A stretch of 64,000 nt of DNA from Iphione sp. A-MEVVRFRX5 (taxonomy: Eukaryota): the NCBI GenBank assembly GCA_976226885.1, contig OZ320316.1:90768001-90832000 (forward strand), given 5' to 3'. Below the pieces are notes generated by a model. The model was not told the origin of the DNA and ran no database searches. It saw only the letters and a list, made by a program, of their open reading frames with translations. The first letter of the stretch is position 1; the number at the start of each line of letters is the position of its first letter. A program made the translations under genes and the position numbers. Positions 23,701-64,000 of the stretch are shown piece after piece.

Positions 23701-24194
23701 TAAAACTAGTTATCACATTGCGTGTGGTTCCAAGACACTGTTACCAACCCGAACCATAGCCTACTACGAACAGGTTCTGCCGTTACTAAGGTGGCCGGGG
23801 TGCAGTCATTTGCAGCCATGAGATAGAACGGGAGACTGCGGAATATCACCTGTCCCACCCCTGTCAATTACACTAATCAATAGCTTTGCGGCTACAAGGA
23901 AGGGTTAGCATTTACAAGAGTTAAATAGTAATTTTGAAAATACAATGTTTGGTTGAAACACCGTCTCGTGTATTTCTACGACTATGATGGGAGCAGGAAC
24001 TGCTGTGAGTTCATAGTCTTTCTCGTCAACATACACTTCATCCTTATCCACTTCATGTTCCAGCAGTTTCCTATCCTGCAGGTGCTAGCCACGGGGGTCA
24101 TGGCTGGGATAGGTTGCCATCTTTTAGAAGCAATCACGAGTAAGTGTTATGCTACTTCCTGAAGAATTCCGTGAGAGGGAGAGGTCATTCTTTT

Positions 24195-24247
24195 CTCCTC
24201 CTCCTCCTCCTCCTCCTCCTCCTCCTCCTCCTCCTCTTCCTCCTCCT
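24195..24247 (+). repeat. (CTC)n microsatellite, ~17 units
   Basis: Direct reading; one interruption (CTT). Confidence 0.95.
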
Positions 24248-24651
24248 AGCTTTTAGGATTAGGGTAGGGGGTAGTTTGCTGGGCGCCACGCTTGCTACAG
24301 CACTTTCAGAGTATGAATACCTGTAAAGCTAAGACAGATTCCTTCGTCCGAGTGATACAACTAATGGCCCCTTACCAATGCTCCCGATGATTGAATCTTT
24401 ATTGCATCCTGCCTATGCCTTGGAAATCACGTGTTAAGAGAGGCACTTGGAAATAATATTGTTGATATTGTGGACGTGATTAGGCCTGTGCTTTGCTTGG
24501 TGCTACCGGGTCAAGTGACTAACGAGCCTTAGTGGGCCCCTATATGTACTCCTGTTTGTTTGGAGGCTGCTATGGTCACAGTGCTTAAGGTCTCCCTGTG
24601 CTATTTCATTCTTCTCTGATTTCTTTACTGGTTAGTATAGCTTACTTCTTT

Positions 24652-24690
24652 AACGCAGTTTCGACATGTGTCTCTTCAGGCACCTTCATG
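24652..24690 (-). ncRNA. Minimal type I hammerhead ribozyme-like core at the 3' end of the Penelope element (probably decayed)
   Basis: Minus strand CATGAAGGTGC-CTGAAGA-GAC ACAT GTC-GAAA-CTGCG-TT: CUGANGA box (24679-24673), 3-bp stem II, GAAA (24662-24659), A-C/G-U stem III with GUH triplet (24654-24652). The 3' strand of stem I is missing. Confidence 0.55.
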
Positions 24691-26345
24691 TAATGGTTGT
24701 AAATCCTTAAGTCAAGTTGGAAACAAATTTTGTTATTTTTTTATGACGAGGCTAGTTGTCCTATTGGAAGTCACCATGTAGGATATTCAACCCATATGGG
24801 GAAAGTGTTTTGAGTCTGTGGATCCATTTTAATTCTAGTTTGTTTCTCAATATGCGGAACTTGTTCTTTTGGTGAGATGTGTATGCATTCTAAGACTCTT
24901 ATCATCATGTCTTTATATCGGTCGTGCTTGTTGCTGTTAAAATGTTCTGTTATTAAGTTTTTATCTGCGGGTTTCTTTAGGTCATAGAAGTGGTTTTTGA
25001 ATCAGTCCTTAATTCTTAGCTTGGTCTATCCCACATAGTTGATTTTACATTTCTTACATGTGATGGCATAGATCACATTGTTGCTGTTGTAGCTTAATTT
25101 GTGTTTTATTTCATATTCTTGGCTGTTGTGTTGGTTGGAGATCTTTTCTGTTGTGTTTATGGCTGGGCAATATCTATATTTATTGACCTTGCAGCCATCT
25201 TTGGAGTCTTTTGTTTCATCTTTCTCTGTGTAGGTTATTAGTCTGGCCCTGACCAGGTAGTCTCTGAGGTTCTTGGGCCTCCGATGGGCTATCATCAAAC
25301 TCTCCTTACCTATTTCTCTTGTGGTTTTTTGTTTAAGTAGTAGTTCCGAATCTTTCTTGATTATTGTTTCTACTTCGTTGCTGTCTGGTTGATAGGTGCT
25401 GATAAATATGTTTTTATGTCTCTTGTCTGTTGTTCTTGTGTTGCCTTGTTTAAGCAAAATGTCTCTCTCTTTTTTGGAGGCCTCATGTAGTGCCGTTGCT
25501 ATGACCATTTTCGGGTATCATCTTTCTAGGAGGTCACTGGATTTCCCTAGGCTGTGGTGTATGAAGTCTTCATCTTTACTACATATTTTTCTTACTCGTA
25601 GGAATTGGCCATAAGGAATATTGTTTTTCATTTTCAGATGGTGAGCGGAGGTGTAGTGGAGGGTATTGTTGACATCAGTTTCTTTTGTGCACAGGTCTGT
25701 TTCTATCCTCCCTAACTCATCTCTTATTATATATGTGTCTAGGAATTCTACCGACTGTGTGAATCTTTTGACTGTAAAGGATACGTGGTTGGAGGCGTTT
25801 TCCATGGCTTTTAGAAAAGAGTGCAAAATCTCCAATCCATGGGGCCATATGAAGAAAATATCATCTATGAATCTTACATAGAGGCTTGGTTGCAGTGGTT
25901 GTGTGTATATTGATTCGTCATCAAATTTACTCATAAACTGGTTGGCATACGAAAGAGCAACCCTGGTGCCCATGGCAGTTCCTCCTACTTGTAAGTAGTC
26001 TTTGCCACTAAATCTGAAGTTATTTTTGTAAGGACTATTTCTAACAGTTTACACAGTGTAGTGTTGGAAGGTACACTTGTTTCCTTCCGGGGTTCTTCTA
26101 GTTTGTCTCTTATCGCTTCCATCCCCTCTTTCTTCGGTATATTGGCGTAGAGAGAGGTGACGTCCATTGTGACTAAGAGGTCATTTTCTGATGTTTCGGA
26201 TCTTGAGAGTTTATTTAGAAAATCAGTTGTGTCTTTGATGTAGGACTTCTGTAGTGCTGCTATTGGTTTTAGAAAACCGTTTAAATATGCCAATATCTTT
26301 TCCGTAGCGCAGCCGTTCGCTGAAATGACGGGTCTGCCTGGGGTG
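24652..26345 (-). mobile_element. Penelope-like retroelement (RT + GIY-YIG endonuclease), 5'-truncated and frameshifted
   Basis: PGRPVIS, SYIKDTTDFLNKL, LVTMDVTSLYANIP, GTAMGTRVALSYAN, LYVRFIDDIFFIW (FIDD at 25871-25860), TDLCTKETD, IPYGQFLRVRKICS, and GIY-YIG CPAINTT...NVIYAITCKKCKINYVG (25200-25026). These are diagnostic Penelope-clade motifs. Confidence 0.93.
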
Positions 26346-48328: not shown

Positions 48329-48679
48329 TTACTGTTCCATGTACTCTTGGAGGTCTGTCATAAATTCGTCGTTGTTGTCCTGTCGTTGGCACTGAGTTGG
48401 GAGTGTCACATCCACTTCACTACGGCGACACTCGGCGACGTATAAGGCACCAGCATTGCAACTAGCACCCTCAGGCTGGCTGACTTGGTTGGCACAGATG
48501 GCCTTGAATGGCTCGGGGTTCACGATACGGTAGCACGGACGAAGAGTCGATTCTCTGCTGAAGAGTCGCGTGCATTCTTGTCTGGCGGCGTCCGTTGCAG
48601 ATGTGCGCGCCATGTTTCGGCTTCGGGCGCAGCGGCGGCCCACGGCCCATGAAGAGGCAAACTGTGAGATGCTGGTGAC
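48329..48679 (-). CDS. Terminal coding exon with C8-like cysteine-rich domain
   Basis: VTSISQFASSWAVGRRC...CTRLFSRESTLRPCYRIVNPEPFKAIC...CNAGALYVAECR...QC...EQ*; a C8-type Cys pattern following the VWD domain. Confidence 0.82.
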   Translation of the reverse strand, partial: VTSISQFASSWAVGRRCARSRNMARTSATDAARQECTRLFSRESTLRPCYRIVNPEPFKAICANQVSQPEGASCNAGALYVAECRRSEVDVTLPTQCQRQDNNDEFMTDLQEYMEQ

Positions 48680-51600
48680 CTACAGGAAGGCAATCATTCA
48701 TTCTTGTATTCATCATTAATGAAATGAAAGCATCGACCCGTCATCCTATACATATTGCAGAAAAGGGAACCCATTTTTCATCAGTACCGAGGGGTAATGT
48801 GGGAAAAGATCCTTCCCTCTGTTCAGGCATAGAAAAATAACGTTACAGGCAGGCAGGCATTGACTCAAAATAATTCAACTTTCCGCGAAATATGTGCCAG
48901 GCCACTAGTCTTACCTTGTTGCCCTCAGCTGTGGTGAGATCGTCAGCCTGTTCATTATTGTATGTGCCGAAAAGTCCCGCCAACTTGCCGAAATACCAAC
49001 CAGCAACGTTCAACGTGCATGAATCGTATGCCAGGTCGCACTCAACCGTGAAGCCCTTCTTATCTGTTACTGTCAGGATATCCTCGTTCACACTGACAGT
49101 TGTGGTGGCCCACTGGGAAGGCAGTTCCGCATTCTGGCCGTCGATTGTCACCTGAAAAATACAATTTACTGATAGTAAGCACAGTTAAGTAAACAACAGA
49201 ATTACCCTTGAAAAGACAGCAACGCGTAGCGAAATTCATTTGGGCAAGATTGCTCGTTTAAAGTGGTCTTAATTCTATCTACTTTCACGAGAAGAGAGAA
49301 AAAGACATACACGTCCATCGGTGAAGATCTCAATCTCCTTGCCGGCTGAGGCAACGATTACAGAGCGCTTGCTGACACCACTGCTGAGGCCGTCGTAGTT
49401 GACGGTCATGGAGAAATTGCCATCCACGAAGTCCCTGGCCAGCAGGTAACTGCATGGGGAGGCAAAGTCGTAGTGCTTGCCGTCAAAGGTAATGTAGTGC
49501 TGGCGGCCCGCTAATGTGGCGTGGGCTGTAACAAATGAAGAATAATGAGAAGGTCATTCTTAGCCTATGATGTTCGGACTATCGTCAAGCAGGTGACACA
49601 ATTTGGTTAACTGGCATTGTTTGATTTTCTCTGCTTCCCCCTTTAGTGTCTAACCACGTTTTTATATGCAGGTAATACTACATGATACTTGCCCTTGAAT
49701 GGTGGTAGCCATTCGGAAATATCTGAGCTGGGTTTGAACTTGTAGTATGTATCCCAGACGCTGTAGTCCATGTCAGGGAGAAGAGCGGTTACAGCCCGCG
49801 TCGCGCGCTGATAGGTAGCGGTCATATCGACGAAGGAGACGGTCTGCAGGCGTGGAACTTCCATGGGGATGTGAGCCTGGACCTCCAGGTGTCCGCTGGC
49901 CGGGCTCCATTCAATGATACGGTTTTCCTCCAAATGCAGGTACTCATCGAGGAGGTAGTAGGAATTGCGTTTGACGAAGTTCACTGCCCCGAGTACCACG
50001 TCCCGGACGAAGGCCTTCGTTCTGCTTGGCACATCCAACTGTACGAACGCGGCGCTCATCTGAAGACGAGAATGACAGGTTATGCAGGAATCTTATATAA
50101 CGTTTCTGTCGTATTAAAGTGGGTGGCCGACTCCATCACTAAAAACTTTTACCAGATAGCTTACATAACTCCATAAACATAGACATTTCCGTAGAAAACT
50201 TTAGGTTATTGATCATAGAACCCCTCGAATATTCAACAGAAATTTCTGACATTTTCGTCGGATTTTCGTTTATCACTTCCTATCCGTTGCATCTTTAGAC
50301 TTATGTCAGAAGAAACAAGGTTACATGGGCGTATGAATAACAGGGCATTTAATGTACTGCATAGTTTTGCAGGAAACCAAAAGAAGATAGCACTCAGTGT
50401 ACTGGATGTACCTCATTGTAAGCCCTTTCCATCAGCTGTCTGACGCGTTCGCTGTTTTCGTGTCTGATGGCAGCCTCGATGTATTCTCTGCAAACCGTCT
50501 GAGTGCGGCTGAGGTACTGTGCCGCCGTCTGCAGGAAGTTGCTGGCAAGTCTGTCCAGGAACTCCACCATTGTTTCCAAGTGCGACCGCACCACTTCGTG
50601 GGCGTGATTGATGGCAGCGACGTTTATCCTGCTCAGCTTTTCGGCAGCCGATACCATGAACTCATTTGCTTTGGTTATGAAAGTATTGTACCACGCTAGC
50701 ACCTGCTGAACGCGTGGGTTTGACATTAGAGTGGCGATGACGTCTGAAACGGAAAATAGGCTTCACATAGAACAAGATGTTCTAACAGAATGTTTTATTT
50801 TGCATGGAAAGAAAGTCCTTTATACCAGCTTTAACCGTTGCTGACGAGGTTGTTGCGTTAACTAAGTAAACCCTACGCTGGTGATAAAAGGATATTTAGG
50901 GCCTTCGATTGTGAATGGTCCCCGGCTCTTTCTAGCTGATTTCTGTAAACTGTTACATATTGAATGTAAGAAATGTAATTTGATGTTATCACTGGCACTC
51001 ATGTGCCTGCCGTACTTTATATGTTGAGTAGTTAGCGTAAGAGCTTTATAATTTCATGTGTATAGATATTTGATTCTTTCCACGTGTAGTTGATGTAAGA
51101 TTTCATTCAAGGATCAATCGAAACTGTATAAATTGACGATTTCATTTTAATCTGCTTATTTACAGCGGAGCTTTAAACACATATGCAGTATGTTTTGTCT
51201 TTTCAAATAGCACCTCTGATGTGAAGGGTAAGGTAACATTTAACCTGCGTGGTTAATAAGGCGCTTACACAGGGATCATTATTGAATGTTTGTACTCTTA
51301 CCATCAATATATTCCTGCACCATGACGGTGGCTGATGACACAATATCCCAGGCACGTGTAGCGAGAAGTGAGGCTTTGTGCAGGGCAATCTCGACATATT
51401 TCTGTTTAAATGTAACACATGCGTTCTATGAACCAACAAAAAACGATGAGGGCTCGTAAGATGGATGTACATGTACATGTATGTAATAAGTTACTTTATC
51501 TCCTTTATTGAATTAGCAGTGGGTTGATATAGAACTGACTTTCATATAATCTGCTGATCTAGACAAATCACAAAGGATGGCCATGTTTAAGAATCGTGGA

Positions 51601-54600
51601 TTTTCATCCTGCCATTTATAACATTTTTTTTCTCTGCGTTAAAACACCTGTAAGCTGTTAGCACCTACCTCAATAACAAGGAGAGCTTCCTCACGCAGTG
51701 CAATGTATTTTTCCACTGCCATATCATAGTACTTCTCGTATTTCTTCACAGCCTCACGGGCGGCCACCATAGCCGCATTGGCCATCGTTGAGGCTCTTGC
51801 GACGACTGTGTTCCACATCTCAGTGCACGTCTCAGTAACGAACCGAGAAACCTCAACACTGAACTTCACTATGGCCTGGTTAGCAGCAGCGGCATATGCA
51901 CCAACGGCCTCTTTAACTTTGGTGTATGTGGCCCTGAAACCATAAACGTATTCATGGAATTATTTGACTATCACGGCTGATATGCGCATTAATTAAAGAA
52001 CCGATATCTAGCTATTCGATTTTGTATTAGATATATTCGAAACCAAAATTGTACATGTACTCACAAAAGGACAATCTTTGGATAACTGATACATACCGCA
52101 GAGCTTCAAGATGCCGTGCACTGGCACGATAAAGGGTTCTCATGTAGAATTCATTCGAGTTGAACATGCTCAGAGTTACCCTCTTCGTGACACGGTAGTC
52201 CTGGTAGAAGCTCCTTGCTTCCTCAGCAAAGTAGCTTGAAATAGGTGCGGTGCTTGGCAGAGCTGTCCTGATTGCGTCTCTCTTGGCTCTGATTTCCTTG
52301 GTGAAGGCCTTAGACACGATCCTGCTGATTGAACCAATCTCCTGACGGGCTAGTTTCTTTGCCTTTTTGGCAGCGAACTGTTTTGGAGAAAATTATAATG
52401 GCATACTTGCATAAAGTTGGTTTGGGAAATTCATGAAAATAAAATTTATTGTATACAGAGCTTGAAGAATACATGTATATTCAAGTCAGTAAAATAATTT
52501 TTTATTATTAAATCGGGGCACCGCCACTAGTGTATTCCTAAGGTCTTACCATTGCCTCTTCGTAGGCATCTGGTCTCCAGTAGACTTTGGTGTTGAGAAG
52601 GTGCTGATCCTTAAGGTTCATTGACATGTGGCCCTCGAGGGTTTCACGACCGTCACTATGGCGCTTAGCCTCCACCACGAGGGATTTGCCATCGATATAC
52701 TTGCCATACATATGGAGCATGTTGTTTGGCTTCCCTATGAAAAACACGGAATGCAAAACAGTCGATATTAGGTATCACATGTCAGAATCAATACAACTTC
52801 GAATGTAATAAGGAAAACTGAAAAATGACACATATAATCCCTACTTGACATCAATACCAGTTGTTTCCAATCTTTTTAGTATCAATGGATGCTCTTCTAC
52901 ATATACATTTTTGAACAATTCTGTAATAGATGCAGCGTGCAACAAACAATTATAAACAATTATAATGGAAATACAGATGAATCTCTGGACACATTTTGTT
53001 TTAAAAACTATATTACTTCGTAGTATAAGGGATACCATTGAGGCATTACTTACGGGGTGAGTAGTACGCCTTCATATCGACGGTCTGTGCTTCTGTGTCC
53101 AGGTTAAGCCTAGCTGAGACCTGGTTCTCCTCATCCTCAGTGGCCACTACGTTGACAGAGTACCCGTTCTCTTGGTCCCTCATCTTTCCGTTCAGTTGCA
53201 GCTTCTTGACCGGTGTTAGCAGCTGTAAATATAGAATATTAAGAAGAATTTATTACTCTGTTATTTTCTTTCTGCTACTCATCTGTCAGACTGCATGAAA
53301 GCCAGTAAAGTAAATAATCAAAGCTGTTTACGGTGTTGACGTATTAATTCAAGATGTTCACCTCAACATTGAGTTGCTTGCGGATCTTCTCGATTTCTCC
53401 GCGAAGACTCATGTTGGTCACCTTGCGGCGAGCCGTCATGTAGTTGATGTCCATACCAGCAGAGAAGGAGCTTGCGGTGTTGGCCATATGAGAGTTCATC
53501 CTTACGTCCAGTTTGCTCTGTGGGTGTGAGAGGCCGAGCTCAACAGAATAGTTGCCAGAGTGATCCTGAACCAGAGTACTCATCACTAGCGTATCGCTGG
53601 AGTCGCCAGTGTACTCAATCTCGGTGCGGCCGGAGTAAATGATGTCATCGATGTTCATGGTCCATTGGTTACGGAGTACGATGTCCTAGAAAATAATCCA
53701 CAACGGAAATAAGCTCATGTAACACTTAAATATGAAAGGGTGGAATTGGTAAAAACACAAGACAATCTGTCAGGTGGTATCTACGATATAACAGGAAAGA
53801 GAAATGGACCTTACCTTGGCCATTCTGGGATGTGAGATGACCAGCTGGTGCTTGTGTGTATTTCTGATGTTCTCGTAGGTATTACGCAAGGTGACCATGC
53901 GGCTGGCATCACGGGCGGCATCCCACTTGGCCACAAGCTCCGTTTCGTACTTCTGGCTGTCGTCTCTGTGTTTCAGCGTCGACTCGACAGCACGGATTGG
54001 CGTGTCCAAGCGGATGCGTGATTCGAAGATGCGGTGGTAGCGGGACTGACGGGAGAGAATATCGACCTCGTAGGAGGCCTTCTTATCCTTAGCCTCGTCC
54101 CAGATCACTTCGAGTTTGTGGGCAAAGCGAACAGCAGACCGCTCGAGTTCCACGTTGATTCCGGTGGTACGGATTGCGGTGATGAAGCGTAGTCCCACAG
54201 TACGCTTGGCTCCCTCCAGCTTATGACGAAGCTCGACGCCGACTTTCTTGTCCTCACGGCGGGTGTCCCAGTGAAGAGTGGTCTTGGCTGTGAAATCTGC
54301 GGGTTCACCGACAAATTCAACATCGATGCTCATCGGGTGAGGCTCAGCCATGGAGAAGGTGACCATCTGCTTGTTACCAGATACTCTGTAGTGATTCTGA
54401 GCATCAAGAACCTTGTTGCCGTTGTAGGTAAGTTGAACATTTGTCTCCACTGAAGCCCGTGCCTTCTTGAAGCCGCCTGACATTGTCATCTCGTTCAGAA
54501 GTCTGAAGGGGGTGCTCAATGTAAGTTGACCGTCGAAGTCCTGAGATGAGCGCAGATTGTAGCTGCCGGCTAACTGAACCTGCTGCCTGTTCCACGTGGC

Positions 54601-57600
54601 AACTAGGCGAGGTTGGTGACGCGTTCCTTCAGGGGCATCGCTCATTTCAATGCTTGTTTCTTCCCAGTTGGTGAAAGGTGTGTACAGTTTGACAAATGCC
54701 TCAACCGGCATTGCATTCTGCTCCCTGTAGATACTGTCAACCTTGATTACCTGGGCGTTTAGGTTTCCTTGAGCAGTGCTCTTTAGATTCTTCCAGTTAC
54801 CTTCCTGCTTGAATTCAGCACCGACTGATTTTACCGCATTGAATGGCGTGTTCAAGTTGAGGGAGACATCTAGAGAGTTAGGTTTCCTGTCAAAGGTCCC
54901 CTTGATGCTTATTGTCTTCTTCGAACCATACGTCAGTGTGGCATCGCTGTCAACAAGGTCTTGTTCGTACACATGGTTGAACTTCAGTGCGGTCTTCTTG
55001 AAACCCCTGAAAGGAGTCATCAGCAAGATGCTTCCAGAGATCTTTGGCTGGAATTTGATGTTAACTTCGGTAGAAATAGCATTATTGTAGTAATGGCCAT
55101 TTGCTTTGGTATACAGACCGGACGAGGACATTTCATGGCGGAAAGCAGCAGAGATCTTCTCCATGTAAGGGATGGTGCTCTCGAGCTCAACGTGACCGAC
55201 TGTGCGGGCATAATTCTTGAAGTCCATGTTGAAAGACATCACACTGGCACGGTTGTGCTTGATATTCAGAGAGGAGTAGAGGGCGCGGCGGTTGCCTCTG
55301 TGACTCATGTCCAAGGTTATTTCACGGACTTCAGCGAAGGGCGTCGCCAAGCGGACTTGCACGGTCAGTGGCTTAAGCTTGTAGTTTCCATCAAGCTCGA
55401 ACTTGCCATAGTTGGAAATAAGCTCAACATTGATGCTGTCGGCCGAATATTTGACATTGACAGACGCATCAGAGATGGCATGGACTGTTGACTTCAATGT
55501 GGCTGCAACCTCTCCACCTCTCATAGCAAATGTTAGATCGGCCTTATGCTGGTTGACCTCGGCATGACACTTGAAGTTCTGAGGTGTTCCCTCATGGTTG
55601 TAGATGACATTGAAAGCCTCCTCCATGAATGGAGTAACAATTCGCAGTTGACTCTCGAAGGTGTTACCGGATAGATGATACTTCACCAAGGTGGACATTT
55701 CCTCTCCTTTGTATTGTACGCTGGCGTAGACAACAAAGTTTCGTCGATCACCCTGATACTTTACAGTGACACCAGCTTCGTGCAGTTTGGTGTGCGGTGT
55801 ATCGAACTTGGTATAGATCTTGATGACTGACGAAGTTTCAACCTTAAGCTCAGCGTCGAGTGCTCGTTGTCCATTGTAGTGGGCCTTTGCAATCGTGTTG
55901 AAATTAGCGAGGGAACCCTTGTGGCTAGCAGTGACAACTATGTCACTAAGTATGGCGAATGGTGTCTTAACTTTGTAGACGACATCTACTTCAGGTTGAC
56001 CCTTGAACGAAAGGTATGAGCTGAATCTCTCTTCTCCGTTGTGTGAAATGCTGGCAGTGCTTGTAAACTGTGTCAGAGAGCCCTGGTGAGAAATAGTAGC
56101 GTCAATATTGTGTGAAGCAGTGAATGGTGTCGCCAACTGCATCTGCACACGGATTGCTGGTTGCGTAGCAAAAACTACTTGCCCATCAAACTTATTCTGG
56201 CCATTGTGGCTGACAACAGCTTTGCTTGTGAACTGGTTTAGTGTTCCCTCGTGAGAGAGAGTGGTGATAATGTTGTGGCCAGGGGTCCTGATTTTCATCT
56301 CACCTCCAAATTTAGGCTGGGCAGCAAAGGTTAACTCGCCATTGAAAATGTTCTGGCTGTTAAGGTCAACAGATGCCTGGCTTCTGAATCTGCGCATTGA
56401 ACCGTCATGGTTCAGAGTGGCGGCAACGCGTCGGGCTGCTGAGAATGGTGTCTGCAGTTGGATGTCGGCCTGCATTCTTGGGTAGGTCTGGATGTCGATC
56501 TGGGCCTGTCCAATTTGCTGGCCATTGTGGTTTACTGTGGCGTGAGTGTTAAACTGGTTAACGTTGCCAGAGTGGCCAAAGATTACACCAAACTGACGCA
56601 GAGAGCTGTAGGCCGTCTTTACCTGGACATTTCCTTCGATGCGTGGTTGATATTTAAAAGTTAACCTACCATTGAATTTCTCGTGACCATTGTGGTTGAG
56701 TGTCAGGGTCTGATCAAGGTCCATTAAATCACCTTGGTGGCTCAGTGTCATCACCACATGGCGTGCTTGTGAGAAGGGCGTCTTCAAGCTGAGCTCTCCC
56801 TCTACGTCGGGTTTGAACTTCAGATTGATCTTGCCTTCATAATTGTCATTGTTGTGCTTTAGTGTCACATCAGATTGGAGCCGACGCCTCCATCGACGGT
56901 GGTTAATGTTCAGCTCAACATTCTTCATCGGTTGCCAGGGTGACGCAATCTTCACAGTGCCGTCCAGACCGTTACGTGCCTTCATATCGACGTCCATTCT
57001 GAAGAGGTTTGCTCCGTAGGTAACCGTCAGCTGATCCTTGAAGATATTTCGCTGGTTGGCACCCTTGAAGTTGACGCGCAGGGCGTCGATGTAAGGACAT
57101 GTAGTATCAAAACGGAAAGAGGCTTCAATGGTCGATGTGCTGTCAAAACTAGCTTCATAACTCACGATGCTTTCTTTGTTTCTTAAGTGTGTTCCAGAGC
57201 TCGAGAAACTGCGAAGGTTTCCATTCATAGTGAATTGGATTTCATGCTCGGCACAATATGGACTGTCGAATTGGACGTTTAGTTCCACGGACGGATTTGT
57301 TTTCAGCGAGGTAGAGGCCTTAATGACCTGTCCAGGAGCATATGTAAATTCAACACTTGATTTTTGGCTGTTAGCATCATCTGAGTGTTTGATGTTCAGC
57401 CTGATGTTATCAAGTCCAATGATGGGTGCTGACAGGCGGAAGTTACCAACAACAGATGGAAGAGTGTGGAAATCGGCGTCGAGGCTTACGGTTGACAATT
57501 CACAGTTGAACTCTGCGTGGGATTTGAATTGCTGAAGGTTTCCAACATGATCAAAAGCAAGGCTGAAGTCTTTCAAACATTCTACATCACTGGTGAAGGA

Positions 57601-60600
57601 AAATGCGCCCGCCAGTCCATTCTGTGTCTTCAACTCTCCGTTAGCGCTCATGGTGAAATGTTCAGCACTTTTTACCTCAATGCGAGAATCGAAATTGGAA
57701 AGATCGCCATCATGGTTGAACTTGATGGTATACATCTTCATGTTTTTAATGGGGCTTTTGAATATGAACTCACCACGCATTGTTGGTGTGAGGGTAAGAT
57801 CAACATTAGCCTCGATCTTTCCACATCCCGCGCAGGTGGCCTCAACGTGAGAACGAAGCTGCCCAGTTTGGCTAAGGTGAGTGAAAGCTAGGCTGAAATC
57901 TTTGATGGAACGGATATCACTAGTGAAGGAAATTCCCCCAGCCATGGATCCGGATGTTTTCAGATTGACCTTCAAGTTTGCGTGGAAGTGTTCCCGGCTG
58001 GCCACATTCAAATCTGTTTTGAAGTTGTCAAGGGGTCCCTCGTTACTGAATGATATGGTGTACTCCCTCATGTTTGTGAAGGGTGTTTGAAGCTTGAATT
58101 CGCCATTCAGTGGTGCACTGGCAAAATCGGCATCAATCTGCACCTTACCACAGTCATCGCATGTTGCCTCGGCGTGGCAGCGGAACTGCATCATGTTACC
58201 TTCGTGGCTGAATGAGGCGCTGAAGCCTGAAACTGACGGAATATCAGTGCTGAACGAGATGGCTCCTCTGTTCTCAGTGCCGATTTTCAGGTTAGCGTTG
58301 CCTTCCATTTTGAAGTGTTCTTTGCTGACAACAGTGACCTGTGTTGTAAAGTCATTGTTAGGACCTTCATGTTTCAAGGCAAAGCTGTAGTCCTTTGCGT
58401 TTGTGAACGGTGTCTGCAGTTTCAGGTTGGCTGCGATGGATGGCGCGGTGGCCAGGTCGCCTTGCAGTTGCATCTTTCCAACGTGGCTGAGGTCGAGCTG
58501 AGCAGCAGCCCTGACGTTAGGGAAGGAGCCGACGTAGCTGAAAGTGGCGACGTGCTTCTCCAAATAACGGAATGGTGTCTCAATGGCCAAGCGTCCGGTT
58601 ACATCTGGGGCAAAATGAAGTTCGCCTTCGGTCTTAATGCCCTTGAAATCATCGGAGTTGAATTCCATTGCGCCTTGTATTTTGCGGCTGTCTACTGCTC
58701 CAGACAAAGACAGTGTCACGTCATTTGCATGCGGAATCGGGGACTGGAAGCGAAGTACAAGATTATTGACCGGATCAGCATTGAAGGTCATAGCCGCGCG
58801 GGTTGAAATGCCGTTCAAGGTGAAGGTGGCCTGTGAATCGGAAGCCATTCTGTTGCCCGCATGGCTGAATCTAAAGCTGATGTCCTTCAACGAGTCGCAG
58901 CTTGTCTTCAGCTCGTAGGAGCCTTCGATTGATGGCCTAGATGTGAAGCTGTTGGTGAGCTGAATGAGGTTGTTGTCGTTGTATGTGAGCAGGCCGTCCT
59001 GGGTGTACCCGTTGTTCGATGTCTTGTGTTCAAAGCTGAAATCCACCTTCTGCACAGCGTTGATACTAACACGCGCCGTCATGTCGGGGGTCATGGTGAA
59101 CTGGATCTCGGCAGTCATGGGGTCCTCTGGTTGCACAGTCAGCAGCACTTTAGAGGTGAATGCCCGAACATTTCCTGAATGTGAGATCTCGAATGTAACG
59201 TCCCTGATTGCTTGAACCGTGCTCTTCAGAGTAAACTTGCCATTTATGTCTCTGAGTGCCCGCAACTCCGCGTTGGCGTCGATGTGTTGGTCGTTCATGA
59301 AGAGGCGTGCAGCAGTATTGAAGCTGAGCAGACTACCTTCGTGGGAAACGACAATGCCGGCCTTCCTTACTTCTCTATAGGGTGTATTTAATTCAAACTG
59401 TACATTGATATTGTCGTTCACGGAGGCGGCCCCATTCAGAATGACCTTCTGGTTGGCATACTGCACTTCGGAGATATGCTTGAAGTTGATGAAATCACCT
59501 TCGTGGTTGATGGTGACGGTCAAATCCTCGGTGAAAGGTGTGGTGAGGCGGAGACTACCCTGGATTCCAGAGTTTGCATTCAACTCGGCGGAAGCAGCGA
59601 TTCTCTGGTTGTTGTATTTGAGGTCACTTGTGGTCCGCAAAGCATACCAAGGTCCATTGTGGGAGAAGTTGAATTCGATGTTCTCGAGGGACCTGATGGG
59701 AGTGACAGCTCTGACGGAAGCAAGGATGGCATCGGCTACTTGAAGAGAGGTGTCTATTTCCGTTTTCTTGTTCTCGTTCAATTGGGCTTCAATATGCGTT
59801 ACCATATTGCGCCAGCCACCATTGTGATTGAACGCCATCTGAAGGGAACGAACATGTGACCAAGGGGTCATCAGAGTGATTTGACCCTGCAGGTCTTGTA
59901 CGCTCTGGAGACTTAGCTGAGACCTCAGGACGATAACCTTGTCTGATCCATAACCGGCCTCCAGTGAACTGATGTACCTTCGGGGACCCTGTTCCTTGTG
60001 GCCAGCCTTCAGTTTCAGATTTTTGAATTCGGTAAACGGACTGGTGAATGAAATGGTTGCATCCAAATCTTCAATGGTTGCTTTAACGATGGCCTCGAAG
60101 CTTACTTTTCCCGAAAGCTGATTGTGCGTGATCTCAGCATTCAGTTTGAAGTCATTTGAGGCGCCTGAAAAGCCTGCATTAGCTGTCATATGTCTCATGT
60201 AGCTGAATGGGGAGACAACTTGGATGTCAAGTGTCTTACTGTTGCCGCCGCGGGCTCGCACCTCGGCCATGATCTTCTGGTTGGCGTAGGTGAATTGTAC
60301 TTTGTTGTATTTAGTTTCAGCATCATTGCGCATAATCACCTGGAGATGTAAGTCTTCGAATCCCCTGAAAGGACTGTTGAAGGAGAGCGACACTTCCTTT
60401 GCAACTGGGTCGTATTGAAGTTCTGTGGCAATTGTTACGTCGGCATGTGAGACAGCAGCAATTGATACCCAAGTATTTGAGACTTTCTTGTACTTGAAAA
60501 TGAGAGACATTGTGTGCTCAGGAGCATCCAGTGCGATGTGGGAATCAAGGAAATCGGTTTCTTTGGTGTCATAATGTCCATTGATCTTTCGCATGTTTCC

Positions 60601-63540
60601 GAAGCTGACGGCGGCAATCTCAAACTTAGACTTGCTGCTGCCATTCATCTCTTCATATTCACCAACGGACTTGATGTTTGAAACTGCAGCGAAAGGAGTC
60701 TTCAGCTCAATGGTTACCTTCTTGTCATCAGACTGGATGTCAAAATCGATCTTCTGTGAATGTCCGAAGTTAAAATCGGTATGCCAGTTTCCTCGTTCCA
60801 TATGATGGTTCAGGGCAAGGTTAAGTGGCTGCATTCCTGGGTGGACCAATTTCATGTTAGATATTATTCGACGTAGTCCATAGACATTGGCCATTGTGGT
60901 GAAAATGGTCTTCTCACCAGAGGTGAGCAAATCAAAGTTGAAATCGTTCTGGAACCGGACGCCCTCTCCCGTGTGTCTCAGGCTGGTCTTCAGGCTCTCC
61001 AAATAGCGTGATGGAGTCTCCATGTCCAGGTCAAATTTGATATTAGGATGGATTGACACAACAGTCTGAATTTGAACCTTTTGTCTTGGAGCATACTCGA
61101 ACTCTGTCTTGGACTGCCATTCATCGCCGACCTTCTTGTGCACAATGTTTAAAGTGACATCCTTCATAAATGAAGCAGATAATGTGGCCTGCGCATTAAA
61201 GTCATCTCCCGAATTGGCAGTGATACTTGAGTCGTAGTTTACGTTATGGAAGTCGCTTGCATAAGCAGCCCTCATCTGGCTTGCGAAGCCGGCACGACGA
61301 ACATTGTGGTTGAACTGAGCAGTTGCACTCTTCAAGTGCGGGCATGGTGTTTTCAGGCCAATGGTGATGTCCATCGCTGGAGCTGGGGTAAAGGTTGTGT
61401 CCAACTGGATCTTGCTGTTCTCTGCATAGTCGAAGGCAAGTGAGTTGATGTACTTGTTACCGGTCATGCTGTGGTCAACGCTCAGCATGAGGCGCTCAAA
61501 GTTTTGGAAGGGGCTGACAAAGCGAATGTTACCTCTGGCATGGTTGGCGTCCGCGGAGAGTTCACCCTCTACTGCCACCTTGTTGGTCTTGTCCCATTCG
61601 AACTCAACATGTCCAGCGAAGGGAGATGCATCAGCCTTCAGGCTTGCACTGGTAGAGAACAATCTGCCTGCAACGTTGATATCTGCTTTGCCGTCGTAGT
61701 TCATGCGGGCTACTTTCATGTCGAGGTCCACATTGAGGAGCTGGGCATTGTTCTTCGATAAAATAAAGGTTCCCTTGGTTATGCCGCCATTTTGTGTCTT
61801 CTGTGCATCTACAGCAAGGCTCCTGACAGCCTCGAAGGGTGTCTCTATCTGAAGTCGTGTGGCTAGTTGTCCACGGTTGGCCGCAGTGTGCGTAAGGTCG
61901 ATCTTGGCCGATTGAGAGTTGGCGCCGATCTCGTAGTTGATCCTGACGTTTGAGGAACGGATGTTATGCGTCCAGGTGGCAATGATGTTCTCAGCATTCT
62001 GGAAAGGTGTGCTGATCCTCAGCTGTCCATTGTTGATGAGATGTTGTCGGCCTGTCTCGTGGATTAGATCAAATGCTGCAGACAAGGTGCGTCCTTGGCC
62101 CAGACTTGCTTCCAATAAGTTGGTGAACTTGTTGCCATTGGTGGTATGTTTTGCTCTGGCGGACATGTCCTCAAAACTGCGGAAAGGTGTCTTCAGGTGG
62201 ATGTTGAAGTCAGCGTCACGCATGTTCCTGCCAGTGAGGAGCTTTCCTGTAACAGACACTTCGGCTTCCTTGTTGTTTACATAGCCACTTGCGCTTGTGC
62301 TCAGATGACCATTGCTGAACCTGTGGCCAAGGGAAACTCCGGCACGGCGGACTGTACGGAAAGGCGTCCTTGTTGAAAGGGAGTATTCCATCAGGTTAGG
62401 GTAGCTGTGCTTACCTGTGATATCGAACTCCATCTTCTGGCCAGAATATACGCCTTCAATATGAGCGGTTACCTGGTCGTCGAGCGTGTTCAGGTTCAGG
62501 GCACCGTTGATAGTTTCAACGAAAGGCGTGCTGATGGTGAGATCGCTCTCAAAGTTCCTCCATCCCGACAGCTTCTTTACCTCGAGGACGCTGCTGATCT
62601 GCTGGCCCTCCTTCCATGAGACGACGATCCTGTTGTTATAGGTGCGATGGTTGTTCATTCCGCTAACGGACATCATGATATCTTCAAGCTTGGGGATGGG
62701 ACTTGTGAATCTGACAGTGCTATCCATTGAGAAGCTGTCGCTGCCCTCACGGATGAATGTCGATTCCGTGTGCAGACTTACCGTCTGACCGGGAGCCCAG
62801 GTTGCCTCGCCATGGGATGTGTACTTATTGTTCCTCTTCTCGTGGTGGAAGGCGACATTGTACTTGCGAGTTGGGCAGATGACGTTTGCCTCTCCCTCTA
62901 CACGGTTATTCTGGTTCATGAATCTACCATTCAGACTGATCTTCTTGGTAGTGTCGCGCTTGGCGTCCCACATGACAGTGGTGTCGTGGTCGAAGGACAT
63001 GGCGTTTGGATCTCTGTTCAGTACAGAAGTCACGGTGATGTATCTGCTGGGGTACTCAATGTCCAACTTCCCACTGGTGGACCTGCCCATCTCATTCTTG
63101 TACTCTGTTGATACGCCAATCCTACGTCCAGCATGCTCAACGCTGGCAGCAGCCTGGAAGTCATCCATGTTGAGGGATGTGCTGCCGACAAATACCGTGC
63201 TTGGAACACCTGGTGGGTTGATTTCGAGGCGAGCATCGTACTTGTTGTTGGGGCTGATGATCAATTCACCGTTGCTGGTGAAGCGGGATGTCGGATGCCA
63301 TTGGAAGGCCATCTCATGAGCGTATCCTGTCGTCTTCTCTTCAAGCTTCTCATGAATAACTATGCTATTGCCTGGGTATGACAGTGTACCGTCGACGATC
63401 ATTGTTAGGGCTGAGGCACTTGGCTTACGGAAGTGGAAATCGAGATCAATTTTCTTAGTCTTCTGGGATGTAATAGAGGCCAGAGTCTTCACCTCATTCG
63501 AATCATGTTTGTGATCGACTTTGGAATCGATATCAATGTT
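48329..63540 (-). CDS. apolpp: Apolipophorin / apolipoprotein B-like large lipid transfer protein (LLTP superfamily), 3' portion; 12 exons, 4183 aa in window; N-terminal part not in window
   Basis: Hand-spliced exons (minus strand): 63540-53815, 53685-53362, 53222-53054, 52734-52550, 52377-52097, 51933-51669, 51401-51302, 50743-50412, 50059-49693, 49525-49311, 49151-48915, 48679-48329 (TAA at 48331-48329). Total 12552 nt. All junctions have AG acceptors and GT donors (one GC), with matching phases 0,0,1,0,2,0,1,0,1,0,0. Domain order is amphipathic beta region, amphipathic helical region, VWD (PPFKAHATLAGRQHYITFDGKHYDFASPCSYLLARDF), then Cys-rich C8-like; this is typical of apolipophorin/vitellogenin/apoB-family proteins. 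Symbol indicates family, not proven orthology. Confidence 0.88.
48915..49525 (-). CDS. von Willebrand factor type D (VWD) domain exons of the apolipophorin-like gene
   Basis: Exons 49525-49311 and 49151-48915 encode HYITFDGKHYDFASPCSYLLARD...VECDLAYDSCTLNVAGWYFGKLAGLFGTYNNEQADD, which are canonical VWD motifs. Confidence 0.92.
49693..53685 (-). CDS. Eight internal exons of the apolipophorin-like gene (end of beta region plus Ala/Lys/Glu-rich amphipathic helical region)
   Basis: Exons 53685-53362 (DIVLRNQWTMNIDD...), 53222-53054 (LLTPVKKLQLNGK...), 52734-52550, 52377-52097 (FAAKKAKKLARQE...), 51933-51669, 51401-51302 (KYVEIALHKASLL...; 100 nt, not in the ORF track, needed to restore phase), 50743-50412, 50059-49693. 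Confidence 0.85.
53815..63540 (-). CDS. Giant 9726-bp coding exon (3242 codons) of the apolipophorin-like gene; tandem amphipathic beta-strand repeats
   Basis: Acceptor tttctcctAG at 63542-63541; donor AAG|GTAAGG after 53815; uninterrupted frame matching the 3240-aa ORF-track entry. Recurrent motif [L/F]x[L/F]xTPF...H.G...F with alternating hydrophobic/polar residues. Confidence 0.93.
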
Positions 63541-64000
63541 CTAGGAGAAAAATTGAAATCAAAACAAACCATGGGAATAATATCCAAATGATACAATTAC
63601 AAACTACTCACAACAATAAAAACTAGAATAGTGTAGTGGTGCGAGTATGGGCTAAGAATAGACATCGGGGTTGACTGTTATTACATAATCTGATGTCTAG
63701 ATATTGTGTAAGGGTGGTCACATGGTTATTCTGGTAACCACTCCAGTTACTTTAACCGAACAACCAATGAGATGGTTGCAGGAATTATTTTTAGTAATGA
63801 ATCTAGACAGAATGTCTAAACAGTGAATATTTTTAGATCAGAAGCCAGACATATGTCTGGGATGTTACTATTGTTAATGTTCTTATGTAATCATGGTATC
63901 ATATGATATCTATAGAAGTATATAAGGAAGTACTTTTTCCTGTAATAAACAGTTATTCTCTCAATTGCACTTCGAGAGAGCACCATTCCAGCAGGCTAAA

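Follow-up and report, generated by a model that had tools for sequence, protein, structure and literature searches.

A 3242-codon exon of an apoB-family gene in Iphione sp. encodes a 55-residue repeat array predicted to form an uninterrupted amphipathic beta belt

Most of the belt of vertebrate apoB is encoded by a giant single exon (APOB exon 26, ~7.6 kb). In its solved form (9E9R, 9EA7, 9BDT, and 9BDE), the apoB-100 belt has 120 strands, with nine interstrand inserts totalling 1,779 residues (PMC11839476). Several other large lipid transfer proteins (LLTPs) have been described from invertebrates. Crustacean dLp/HDL-BGBP (~4,830 to 4,890 aa in Astacus and Scylla) is a precursor that is furin-cleaved into subunits, two internal sites releasing BGBP (PMC8416765). 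Insect apoLTP-II/I (Apoltp, CG15828) scaffolds the lipid transfer particle; it carries a furin site behind its N-terminal module and works as a transfer catalyst, not a bulk carrier (PMC3406001). Insect apolipophorin-II/I (~3,300 to 3,400 aa) is split N-terminally by furin, giving subunits of ~80 and ~240 kDa (PMC8545670). Finally, the discoidal lipoprotein of the polychaete Nereis virens consists of subunits of 247 and 85 kDa, and its scaffold protein is still unknown (PMC8416765).

Here, we analyzed a window of 64,000 nucleotides of Iphione sp., in which an earlier note, made from the letters alone, had proposed a single giant exon encoding a tandemly repeated, apoB-like lipid-wrapping belt. 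The minus-strand frame is open from 63540 to 53773 (3256 codons), and the exon itself (53815..63540, minus) comprises 3242 codons translated without a stop. It is preceded by a splice acceptor AG (63541..63542, minus) with a polypyrimidine tract upstream (…tttttctcctag|AAC ATT GAT) and followed by the donor AAG|GTAAGG, with the GT at 53814-53813. Both sites are canonical and, together with the open frame, bear out the single exon; its start point is shared with the ORF-type homologues P0003, P0005, P0006, P0008, and P0010. From this donor, a 129-nt intron (53686..53814, minus) runs to the acceptor …ttttctag|GAC, and the tblastn alignment with homologue P0004 continues in-frame across it into the next exon (53362..53685, minus; 108 codons), where homology to P0004 extends up to residue ~3850. 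The intron upstream of the giant exon contains a dispersed repeat of ~365 bp (63637..64000) that does not belong to the coding feature; of the 40 genomic matches scored for it (first-look candidates, 1,251), 39 were other copies at 79 to 84% identity.

The self-similarity of the exon, calculated as BLOSUM62 autocorrelation against 50 shuffles, peaked strongly at a lag of 55 residues (z = 14.7), with harmonics at lags of 110 (z = 7.7), 164 (6.2), and 219 (7.3). Along similar lines, [TS]P[FWYCIG] motifs were spaced 52 to 60 aa apart or at multiples thereof. A repeat profile derived from the exon gave 55 matches within it, 44 of them clear (i-E < 1e-6, covering exon aa 3 to 3214) and ~11 weak. 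The number of strands modelled by AlphaFold in exon aa 1 to 1164 (84, that is, 21 four-strand units) extrapolates to ~59 units over all 3242 codons, in agreement with the first estimate of 55 to 60 copies; the example unit given with that estimate maps to exon aa 2254 to 2308. The profile columns showed four strands with the strict hydrophobic/polar alternation and the TP(F) and HxG turns noticed before, the complete set of turns being H-x-G, N-G, P, and T-P-F. Units of the array shared ~20% identity with one another, and Tandem Repeats Finder detected no DNA-level tandem repeat in the exon. By sequence comparison, the most similar repeats of the array were three 110-aa double units with C-x-x-C turns (57421..58413, minus; exon aa 1710 to 2040), which were 36 to 44% identical at two-unit spacing. 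Orthologues P0001 and P0002 have one extra double unit in this same region. None of the 3242 residues is covered by a Pfam model, and the matches to LppM (24.9 bits; cut-off, 27) and Ig_VWA7 (12.7 bits) were taken as chance or generic beta matches. The repeat unit was undescribed in the literature searched (one library, which is no proof of novelty), where the only hint of it was a label, "internal repeats," in a figure of a snail LLTP.

Two fragments of the exon were modelled with AlphaFold. The first, of eight units (55636..56949, minus; exon aa 2198 to 2635), had 32 strands with a pLDDT of 94.9 over 438 aa, and the second (60049..63540, minus; exon aa 1 to 1164) had its 84 strands at a pLDDT of 75.4. 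Both models (1602 aa together) were all-beta, with no helix of at least 4 residues and no inserts or long loops. On this basis, the models predict with high confidence that the exon product is an unbroken up-and-down amphipathic beta meander to which each repeat contributes four strands, in keeping with the continuous amphipathic sheet that had been anticipated; such alternation would be compatible as well with a pair of sheets packed against each other. The apoB-100 belt was the best solved match for both models, by fold only, and the only Foldseek matches at a probability of 1.00 were apoB-100 entries (9e9r [E, 6.5e-13], 9ea7, 9bdt, and 9bde), which supports the suggestion of an apoB-like belt fold. 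A local match was found to the lipid-cavity sheet of lipovitellin (Z, 9.0; rmsd, 4.6 Å; 126 residues). Structural matches carry very large rmsd values (15 to 78 Å) and are common to any long up-and-down meander, such as those of outer-membrane barrels and teneurin/Rhs shells. Most VIA-align matches were to outer-membrane barrels, VDAC, and ushers (rmsd, 14 to 32 Å), and we set them aside as shared meander topology, not kinship.

In addition to family membership, the exon and the apoB-100 belt have in common a long amphipathic antiparallel sheet of ~11-residue strands. However, the apoB-100 belt is half as long (120 strands versus ~234 here) and has helical inserts, whereas the 1602 modelled residues of the exon were free of interstrand inserts, and no regular four-strand repeat like the present one has been described for it. 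At the sequence level, no belt similarity to apoB-100 was found in the PDB at E ≤ 10 using the whole exon, the repeat profile, or an 8-unit profile built from window pieces and proteins, and the earlier idea that the array may preserve the repeat ancestry of the apoB belt thus gained no support from sequence. The von Willebrand D (VWD) domain, present in the gene studied here, is not known from apoB.

Among the other exons of the gene, three that lie immediately outside the window on the same strand matched Vitellogenin_N (PF01347; 58.8, 39.8, and 40.2 bits, above the cut-off; E, 5e-16), and three matched the open beta-sheet domain (Vit_open_b-sht, PF09172, DUF1943; 80.0, 82.2, and 33.9 bits versus a cut-off of 23.7; E, 5e-23). 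A genome search for the latter domain recovered the same locus. DUF1081 (PF06448), a marker of the APO family, was weak (18.5 bits versus a cut-off of 25, in one exon) and is carried by full-length homologues. The first exon of the gene is signal-peptide-like. The only PDB match of the N-terminal exon L004:5328-5804 was to human apoB-100 residues 542 to 647 (E, 1.4e-08), and exon L004:4294-4656 had no PDB match; the N-terminal module of homologue P0004 matched apoB-100 with an E value of 4.5e-63 versus 7.7e-28 for lipovitellin. Downstream of the giant exon, two open-frame pieces within 48846..49553 (minus; 49278-49553 and 48846-49184) matched VWD (Pfam PF00094; E, 2.8e-10 and 9e-09; also tblastn), and a cysteine-rich C-terminal exon (48332..48679, minus) was homologous by tblastn to P0004 and P0014 at their C8-bearing end. 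Thus, the Vitellogenin_N, open-sheet, and VWD domains and the N-terminal match to apoB-100 all favor the apoB-family membership claimed at the outset, and by its domain content the gene is classified as encoding a secreted large lipid transfer protein of the apoB family. Exons were compared one by one, and the full length, estimated from homologues, would be roughly 5,400 aa (~1270 N-terminal, 3242, and ~950 to 1130 C-terminal residues). This agrees with the expectation of more than 5,000 aa, but such a size is not unusual, since family members of 4.1 to 6.3 kaa are ordinary.

Orthologue P0001 was 53% identical over 3234 positions and collinear save for one two-unit indel, with the same exon layout at its genomic locus. 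Another homologue was recovered as a single ORF of 4985 aa, carried by a transcript-like contig of 15.4 kb. Like the sequon depletion described below, these two findings point to selection on the protein. The repeat was present in annelid, mollusc, and nemertean homologues, was weak in crustacean dLp/HDL-BGBP, and was not detected in the insect apolipophorin, Apoltp, or apoB-100 belt sequences. Two shorter paralogues occur in the same genome, their belt exons having 1399 and 2242 aa versus 3242 aa here. The absence of a DNA-level tandem repeat, the ~20% unit identity, and the collinear orthologue together indicate an ancient array that is common to the protostome gene family and not peculiar to this genome. 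The expanded belt of the earlier note is therefore not an expansion in this lineage. That the belt grew by duplication of units, as the note suggested, is supported and follows most naturally from the ~59 homologous units, the two-unit indel, and the different lengths of the paralogue exons.

The conserved exons of the gene were 44 to 50% identical to annelid, nemertean, mollusc, and large insect homologues. In a tree of the N-terminal module (47 of 130 proteins, unrooted, with no apoB/vitellogenin/MTP outgroup), the lophotrochozoan family appeared with Apoltp and dLp/HDL-BGBP, split from insect apolipophorin-II/I with an SH-aLRT value of 100. The gene itself is absent from the tree and was placed through P0004 and P0032, which are in it and are 48 to 50% identical to its conserved exons, versus 35% for insect apolipophorin. 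On these identities, the gene is grouped with apoLTP, dLp/HDL-BGBP, and a vertebrate LOC400499-type protein, not with apolipophorin-II/I. The closest characterized relatives are accordingly crustacean dLp/HDL-BGBP and insect apoLTP, instead of the apoB and apolipophorin-II/I named initially.

Crustacean dLp/HDL-BGBP has a similar size, is not separated from this family by the main split of the tree, and carries 6 weak repeat copies (i-E ≤ 0.1) with a period of ~53 to 55 aa. However, the repeat is barely detectable there, the two internal furin sites have no conserved counterpart within the exon, and no VWD match was recorded in the crayfish protein. Insect apoLTP-II/I belongs to the same tree group, with 41% identity over the conserved exons, and has the same succession of Vitellogenin_N, open sheet, DUF1081, a long middle, and then VWD, as well as a furin-type site after the N-terminal module (a motif in our gene), but it has no detectable repeat or 55-aa period. 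Apolipophorin-II/I shares the superfamily and the domain order, yet it falls on a branch apart (SH-aLRT, 100), is only 35% identical over the conserved exons, lacks the repeat, and is ~2,000 aa shorter.

The exon was also distinctive in its N-glycosylation sequons (N-x-S/T), with 2 observed versus 38.7 ± 5.0 expected, a ~20-fold depletion that did not affect control motifs. The same depletion recurred in all lophotrochozoan homologues tested, while sequons were enriched in insect Apoltp, the opposite trend. Regarding furin-type sites, an RSRR motif in exon L004:4660-5208 aligned with the REKR of homologues P0004 and P0014. Within the giant exon, there was a single R-x-[KR]-R (aa 2216), which was not conserved in orthologue P0001; release of a BGBP-like fragment from inside the exon is therefore improbable.

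Taking these data together, we consider it likely that the giant exon provides a secreted apoB-family lipid transfer protein with its lipid-binding beta region, and we infer that the sheet both binds lipid and girdles a particle. Each 55-aa unit would fold into four antiparallel strands of ~10 to 11 residues, with one face hydrophobic and the other polar, and its four turns would carry T-P-F, H-x-G, N-G, and P. Head to tail, the ~59 units would make one uninterrupted sheet of ~234 strands that, given a beta-strand spacing of ~0.48 nm, would be ~110 nm long and ~3.5 nm wide. The N-terminal module would nucleate lipid in the endoplasmic reticulum (ER), and the hydrophobic face of the sheet would be laid on lipid during synthesis, girdling a large circulating lipoprotein particle. 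By analogy with apolipophorin, apoLTP, and dLp, the RSRR site after the N-terminal module probably frees a subunit of ~80 kDa.

The same sheet could instead curl into a trough that moves lipid between lipoproteins and cells, the protein being a lipid transfer catalyst like insect LTP or a groove conduit. Repeating-beta-groove (RBG) transporters (VPS13, ATG2, and TamB/AsmA) are also long amphipathic beta structures made from repeated units. Nevertheless, their unit has five strands plus a loop, versus four strands in 55 aa here, and RBG proteins are cytosolic bridges, or periplasmic, whereas our protein appears to be secreted (signal peptide, VWD, and sequon depletion). No sequence relationship to VPS13/ATG2/TamB was found, and none of their structures was among the PDB matches listed in three comparisons, in which apoB-100 was present. 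Bacterial TamB/AsmA groove proteins did appear as weak shape matches among Atlas predicted models (TM, 0.30 to 0.42), and the pTM of the 438-aa model (0.69) suggests a defined curved shape. The tree position of the lophotrochozoan family next to Apoltp also favors a catalyst, since Drosophila apoLTP moves lipid and carries little of it (PMC3406001), although the lack of the repeat in insect Apoltp goes in the other direction. Overall, we regard this function as unlikely. A mainly non-transport role, either in yolk or storage, in VWD-based clotting, or in beta-glucan/pattern recognition as in crustacean HDL-BGBP, seems very unlikely given that it is difficult to account for a one-sided hydrophobic sheet of ~3200 aa unless lipid is involved and that the only internal R-x-[KR]-R is not conserved in the orthologue. 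This holds even considering the VWD and C8-type end, the weak repeat copies in dLp/HDL-BGBP relatives (6 matches in the Astacus protein), and the functional shifts within the superfamily represented by decapod apolipocrustacein and clotting protein (PMC8545670). A relic or an artifact of annotation, with the giant frame silent or internally spliced, is hardly credible, as 3256 open codons are not expected by chance, the frame is kept stop-free at 44 to 53% identity in two other species, its splice sites are canonical, and the sequon depletion implies selection on a translated, ER-routed product.

The lipoprotein of Nereis virens, also a lophotrochozoan, can be compared by size. Its subunit sizes fit a furin-cleaved family member; however, the 247-kDa subunit fits a shorter paralogue better, since the C-terminal product here would be ~470 kDa unless cleaved again. 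A further proposal, which we consider doubtful, is that the 55-aa four-strand unit is the ancestral block of apoB-family belts, that belt length acts as a molecular ruler, and that the belt is kept glycan-free for assembly. On this proposal, the belt exons of 1399, 2242, and 3242 aa would give sheets of ~48, 77, and 110 nm and three lipoprotein size classes with diameters of ~15, 25, and 35 nm, and N-glycosylation sites would have been almost entirely lost because the belt could assemble only in a glycan-free state.

A structure of the apoB-100 belt became available only in 2024, and this belt is irregular, with half of that region made up of inserts. The present family would provide a much more regular, insert-free belt composed of a single recognizable unit. 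This regularity makes two questions testable, namely, the relationship of belt length to particle circumference, for which the paralogues and the orthologues differing in units would serve as length variants, and whether duplication of units gave rise to apoB-family belts. In addition, candidates for the scaffold genes of annelid and mollusc lipoproteins can be drawn from this family.

The giant exon lies on the minus strand at positions 63540..53815 of the window, within an open frame running from 63540 to 53773 (3,256 aa open), and contains 3,242 codons and no stops. Its 5' boundary is a pyrimidine tract plus AG (…ctcctag/AACATTGAT) and its 3' boundary is AAG/GTAAGG; after an in-frame minus-strand intron of 129 nt, homology carries on in a next exon of 108 codons (53685..53362, minus strand). 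The exon starts at the position of residue 1266 of P0004 (P numbers denote homologous proteins found by search), and the same boundary is the start of several ORF-type homologues. The intron upstream holds a dispersed repeat of ca. 365 bp (63637-64000), probably a SINE-like element, with at least 39 genomic copies at 79 to 84% identity (40 matches scored of 1,251 first-look candidates). Elsewhere, the 2-kb bin 24001-26000 had an AT skew of -0.303, a clear outlier among the window's bins.

We extended the analysis of this 1.18-Gb assembly by 40 kb past the end of the window (G000:C10:90768001-90832000). P0004 and P0014 aligned by tblastn to ca. 12 more minus-strand exons beyond the window, as well as to the in-window exons downstream. 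Domain matches, scored exon by exon, included Vitellogenin_N (58.8, 39.8, and 40.2 bits), Vit_open_b-sht (80.0, 82.2, and 33.9 bits), a VWD domain (49553..48846, minus strand), and a weak DUF1081 (18.5 bits, under the cut-off). The sole PDB match of one N-terminal exon was human apoB-100 residues 542-647 (E 1.4e-08), and the N-terminal module of P0004 matched apoB-100 at 4.5e-63 versus lipovitellin at 7.7e-28. A candidate first exon has a signal peptide-like start (MEGKALVLLALVAGVISG), and an RSRR motif stands at the site of REKR in homologues. The gene thus belongs to the apoB family. Given that the giant exon starts at P0004 residue 1266, we estimate the full product at ca. 1,270 + 3,242 + 950 to 1,130 aa, with exons handled singly rather than as a joined spliced model.

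The 55-aa tandem periodicity that the earlier note had seen within this single exon is real and far beyond chance. Autocorrelation of the exon protein (BLOSUM62, 50 shuffles) had its maximum at a lag of 55 residues (z 14.7) and further peaks at the harmonics 110, 164, and 219, and an exon-derived profile gave 55 matches, 44 of them with an i-E of <1e-6. The unit quoted in that note is located at exon aa 2254-2308. Per-column hydrophobicity of the profile showed strict hydrophobic/polar alternation in four strands, separated by T-P-F, H-x-G, N-G, and P turns. The His of the H-x-G turn (profile column 15) is present in 34 of 46 copies and would form a row along one sheet edge; it is also the consensus across 116 homologous segments. 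C-x-x-C motifs (…EATCDDCGK…, …EATCAGCGK…) at aa 1788-2013 (57421-58413, minus strand) occupy the same turn in successive 110-aa double units and are kept in P0001; there are only 13 Cys elsewhere in the exon.

The array is not a recent expansion in this lineage. No DNA-level tandem repeat was found in the exon, and 43 well-defined units had a mean pairwise identity of 19.8% (maximum, 43.6%). Units two apart were slightly more similar (24.5%) than neighbors (20.6%), owing to three double units at aa 1710-2040. The exon is collinear with P0001 (53% identity over 3,234 positions) and P0002 (44%), the sole large difference being a 107-aa gap at aa ca. 1783, where each of those species has one more double unit. 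The P0001 locus, on a 3-Mb genomic contig, has the same layout (N-terminal LLTP exons, a 10.1-kb ORF, and VWD plus C8 exons), and P0004 is a single 4,985-aa ORF on a 15.4-kb transcript-like contig. A family-wide profile found ca. 1,000 units in 72 proteins at an i-E of ≤1e-4 (none in reversed decoys). At an i-E of ≤0.1, with one decoy match overall, there were 50 matches in crustacean dLp/HDL-BGBP-type and large insect (ca. 5.4- to 6.2-kaa) proteins, 18 in decapod proteins of ca. 3.4 to 4.5 kaa, 20 in chelicerate proteins, and one in apolipophorins; Apoltp and the gecko protein had none. Several arthropod members also had a 53- to 55-aa autocorrelation peak. The collinearity and this spread place the array before the split of these species, and, as judged from sequence, within this subfamily the unit extends across protostomes at a minimum.

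The best matches of the exon were P0001 (48% local identity) and P0002 (41%), followed at ca. 20% by mollusc and annelid proteins of 4.3 to 5.4 kaa that carry Vitellogenin_N, the open sheet, DUF1081, and VWD. The Capitella N-terminal module, used as a query, retrieved 130 proteins, including lophotrochozoan members (3.2 to 6.3 kaa), crustacean dLp/HDL-BGBP (4,889 aa), insect Apoltp (ca. 4.0 to 4.5 kaa), other insect proteins (ca. 6.2 kaa), a gecko protein (4,079 aa), and insect apolipophorins (ca. 3.3 to 3.4 kaa). An unrooted tree of 47 such modules split insect apolipophorin-II/I from all others (SH-aLRT 100) and grouped the lophotrochozoan proteins (95) and, separately, Apoltp, dLp/HDL-BGBP, and the large insect proteins (100). 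The gene's conserved exons were 48 to 50% identical to P0004 and P0032; identity was 44 to 47% with annelid, nemertean, and mollusc proteins, 41% with Apoltp, and 35% with apolipophorin. The very large insect LLTPs of ca. 6.1 to 6.2 kaa (P0059, P0077, P0122, and P0060/62/66, from Anabrus, Blattella, and Cloeon) are distinct from Apoltp and apolipophorin, group near crustacean dLp/HDL-BGBP except for a long-branched Cloeon row, and were 43 to 45% identical to the conserved exons, on par with mollusc. The gecko LLTP (P0116) is full length and carries the Vitellogenin_N, open-sheet, VWD, and C8 domains, and vertebrates seem, from this sequence, to retain a non-apoB member of the subfamily. Pfam PF21013 (LOC400499 family), which matched annelid members too, covers the stretch directly after the open beta-sheet domain in P0116 and directly after DUF1081 in annelid P0021.

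Within the genome (assembly G000), the open-sheet domain occurs at three loci, each with a large open frame that contains the repeat: this gene on contig C10 (3,256 aa open) and apoB-family paralogues at C10:48.67 Mb (L010, G000:C10:48669001-48679000; 2,242 aa) and C2:116.72 Mb (L011, G000:C2:116719001-116729000; 1,399 aa). One genome thus holds three belt lengths. The paralogue frames end in …HPRIR and …HPDLER, after which comes a possibly intronic tail rich in V and R; their resemblance to …HPRMAK/V of this gene suggests a common 3' boundary.

An eight-unit fragment (aa 2198-2635), modeled with a 65-row alignment, was predicted at pLDDT 94.9 and pTM 0.69. Each unit contributed four of the 32 strands, and a helical turn of three residues marked every T-P-F. 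The model of aa 1-1164, with only 13 alignment rows (pLDDT 75.4), had 84 strands, no helix of ≥4 residues, and no inserts, the strands extending through stretches with a weak sequence profile. Extrapolation at 13.9 aa per strand gives ca. 234 strands for the exon. The apoB-100 belt, in contrast, has 120 strands (mean, 11 residues) in 1,774 residues, is ca. 4 nm wide, and is interrupted by nine inserts totaling 1,779 residues (PMC11839476). Among the Foldseek matches listed, only apoB-100 structures reached a probability of 1.00 with either model (9e9r, E 6.5e-13; 9ea7, 9bdt, and 9bde). However, the rmsd was very large and VIA-align scored other long meanders (outer-membrane barrels, VDAC, ushers, and teneurin/Rhs shells) equal or higher, so the match indicates shared topology and local geometry rather than proven belt kinship. 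A low-rmsd local match was the lipovitellin lipid-cavity sheet (Z 9.0, 4.6 Å, 126 residues). In the ESM Atlas, the chordate LOC400499 family was nearest in shape (TM 0.51), ahead of an arthropod LLTP fragment (TM 0.49) and then bacterial TamB/AsmA and LptD.

Among characterized proteins, dLp/HDL-BGBP and apoLTP are the gene's nearest relatives. The sheet is unlikely to be an LTP-like transfer catalyst or groove, and a nontransport role (yolk, clotting, or glucan binding) is distinctly improbable. On the likely reading as a lipoprotein belt, modeled on apoB, apolipophorin, and dLp, lipid would be nucleated in the ER by the N-terminal module, and the sheet would then lay its hydrophobic face across the growing particle. 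At the textbook spacing of ca. 0.48 nm per strand, 234 strands would make a sheet of ca. 110 nm, sufficient to girdle a ca. 35-nm particle.

N, S, and T are among the four commonest residues of the exon, yet it has only 2 N-x-S/T sequons versus 38.7 ± 5.0 in shuffles (ca. 20-fold fewer), with no depletion of the control motifs N-x-[AV], Q-x-[ST], D-x-[ST], and [ST]-x-N. All lophotrochozoan homologues tested, among P0001-P0040, behaved alike (1 to 5 observed, 34 to 71 expected), and lepidopteran Apoltp and the gecko protein were enriched instead. This sequence pattern points to a product that is translated and routed through the ER, and a nonexpressed relic is scarcely credible.

Public databases already list these genes as uncharacterized or "apolipophorin-like," Pfam has no model covering the exon region, and the unit was not described in the literature searched, where a snail paper only labels "internal repeats" in a figure. 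The models predict a regular, insert-free, double-length apoB-family belt. In the polychaete Nereis virens, the scaffold protein of a discoidal lipoprotein with 247- and 85-kDa subunits is stated to be unknown (PMC8416765); although these sizes better fit the shorter paralogue, the gene family described here is an obvious candidate.
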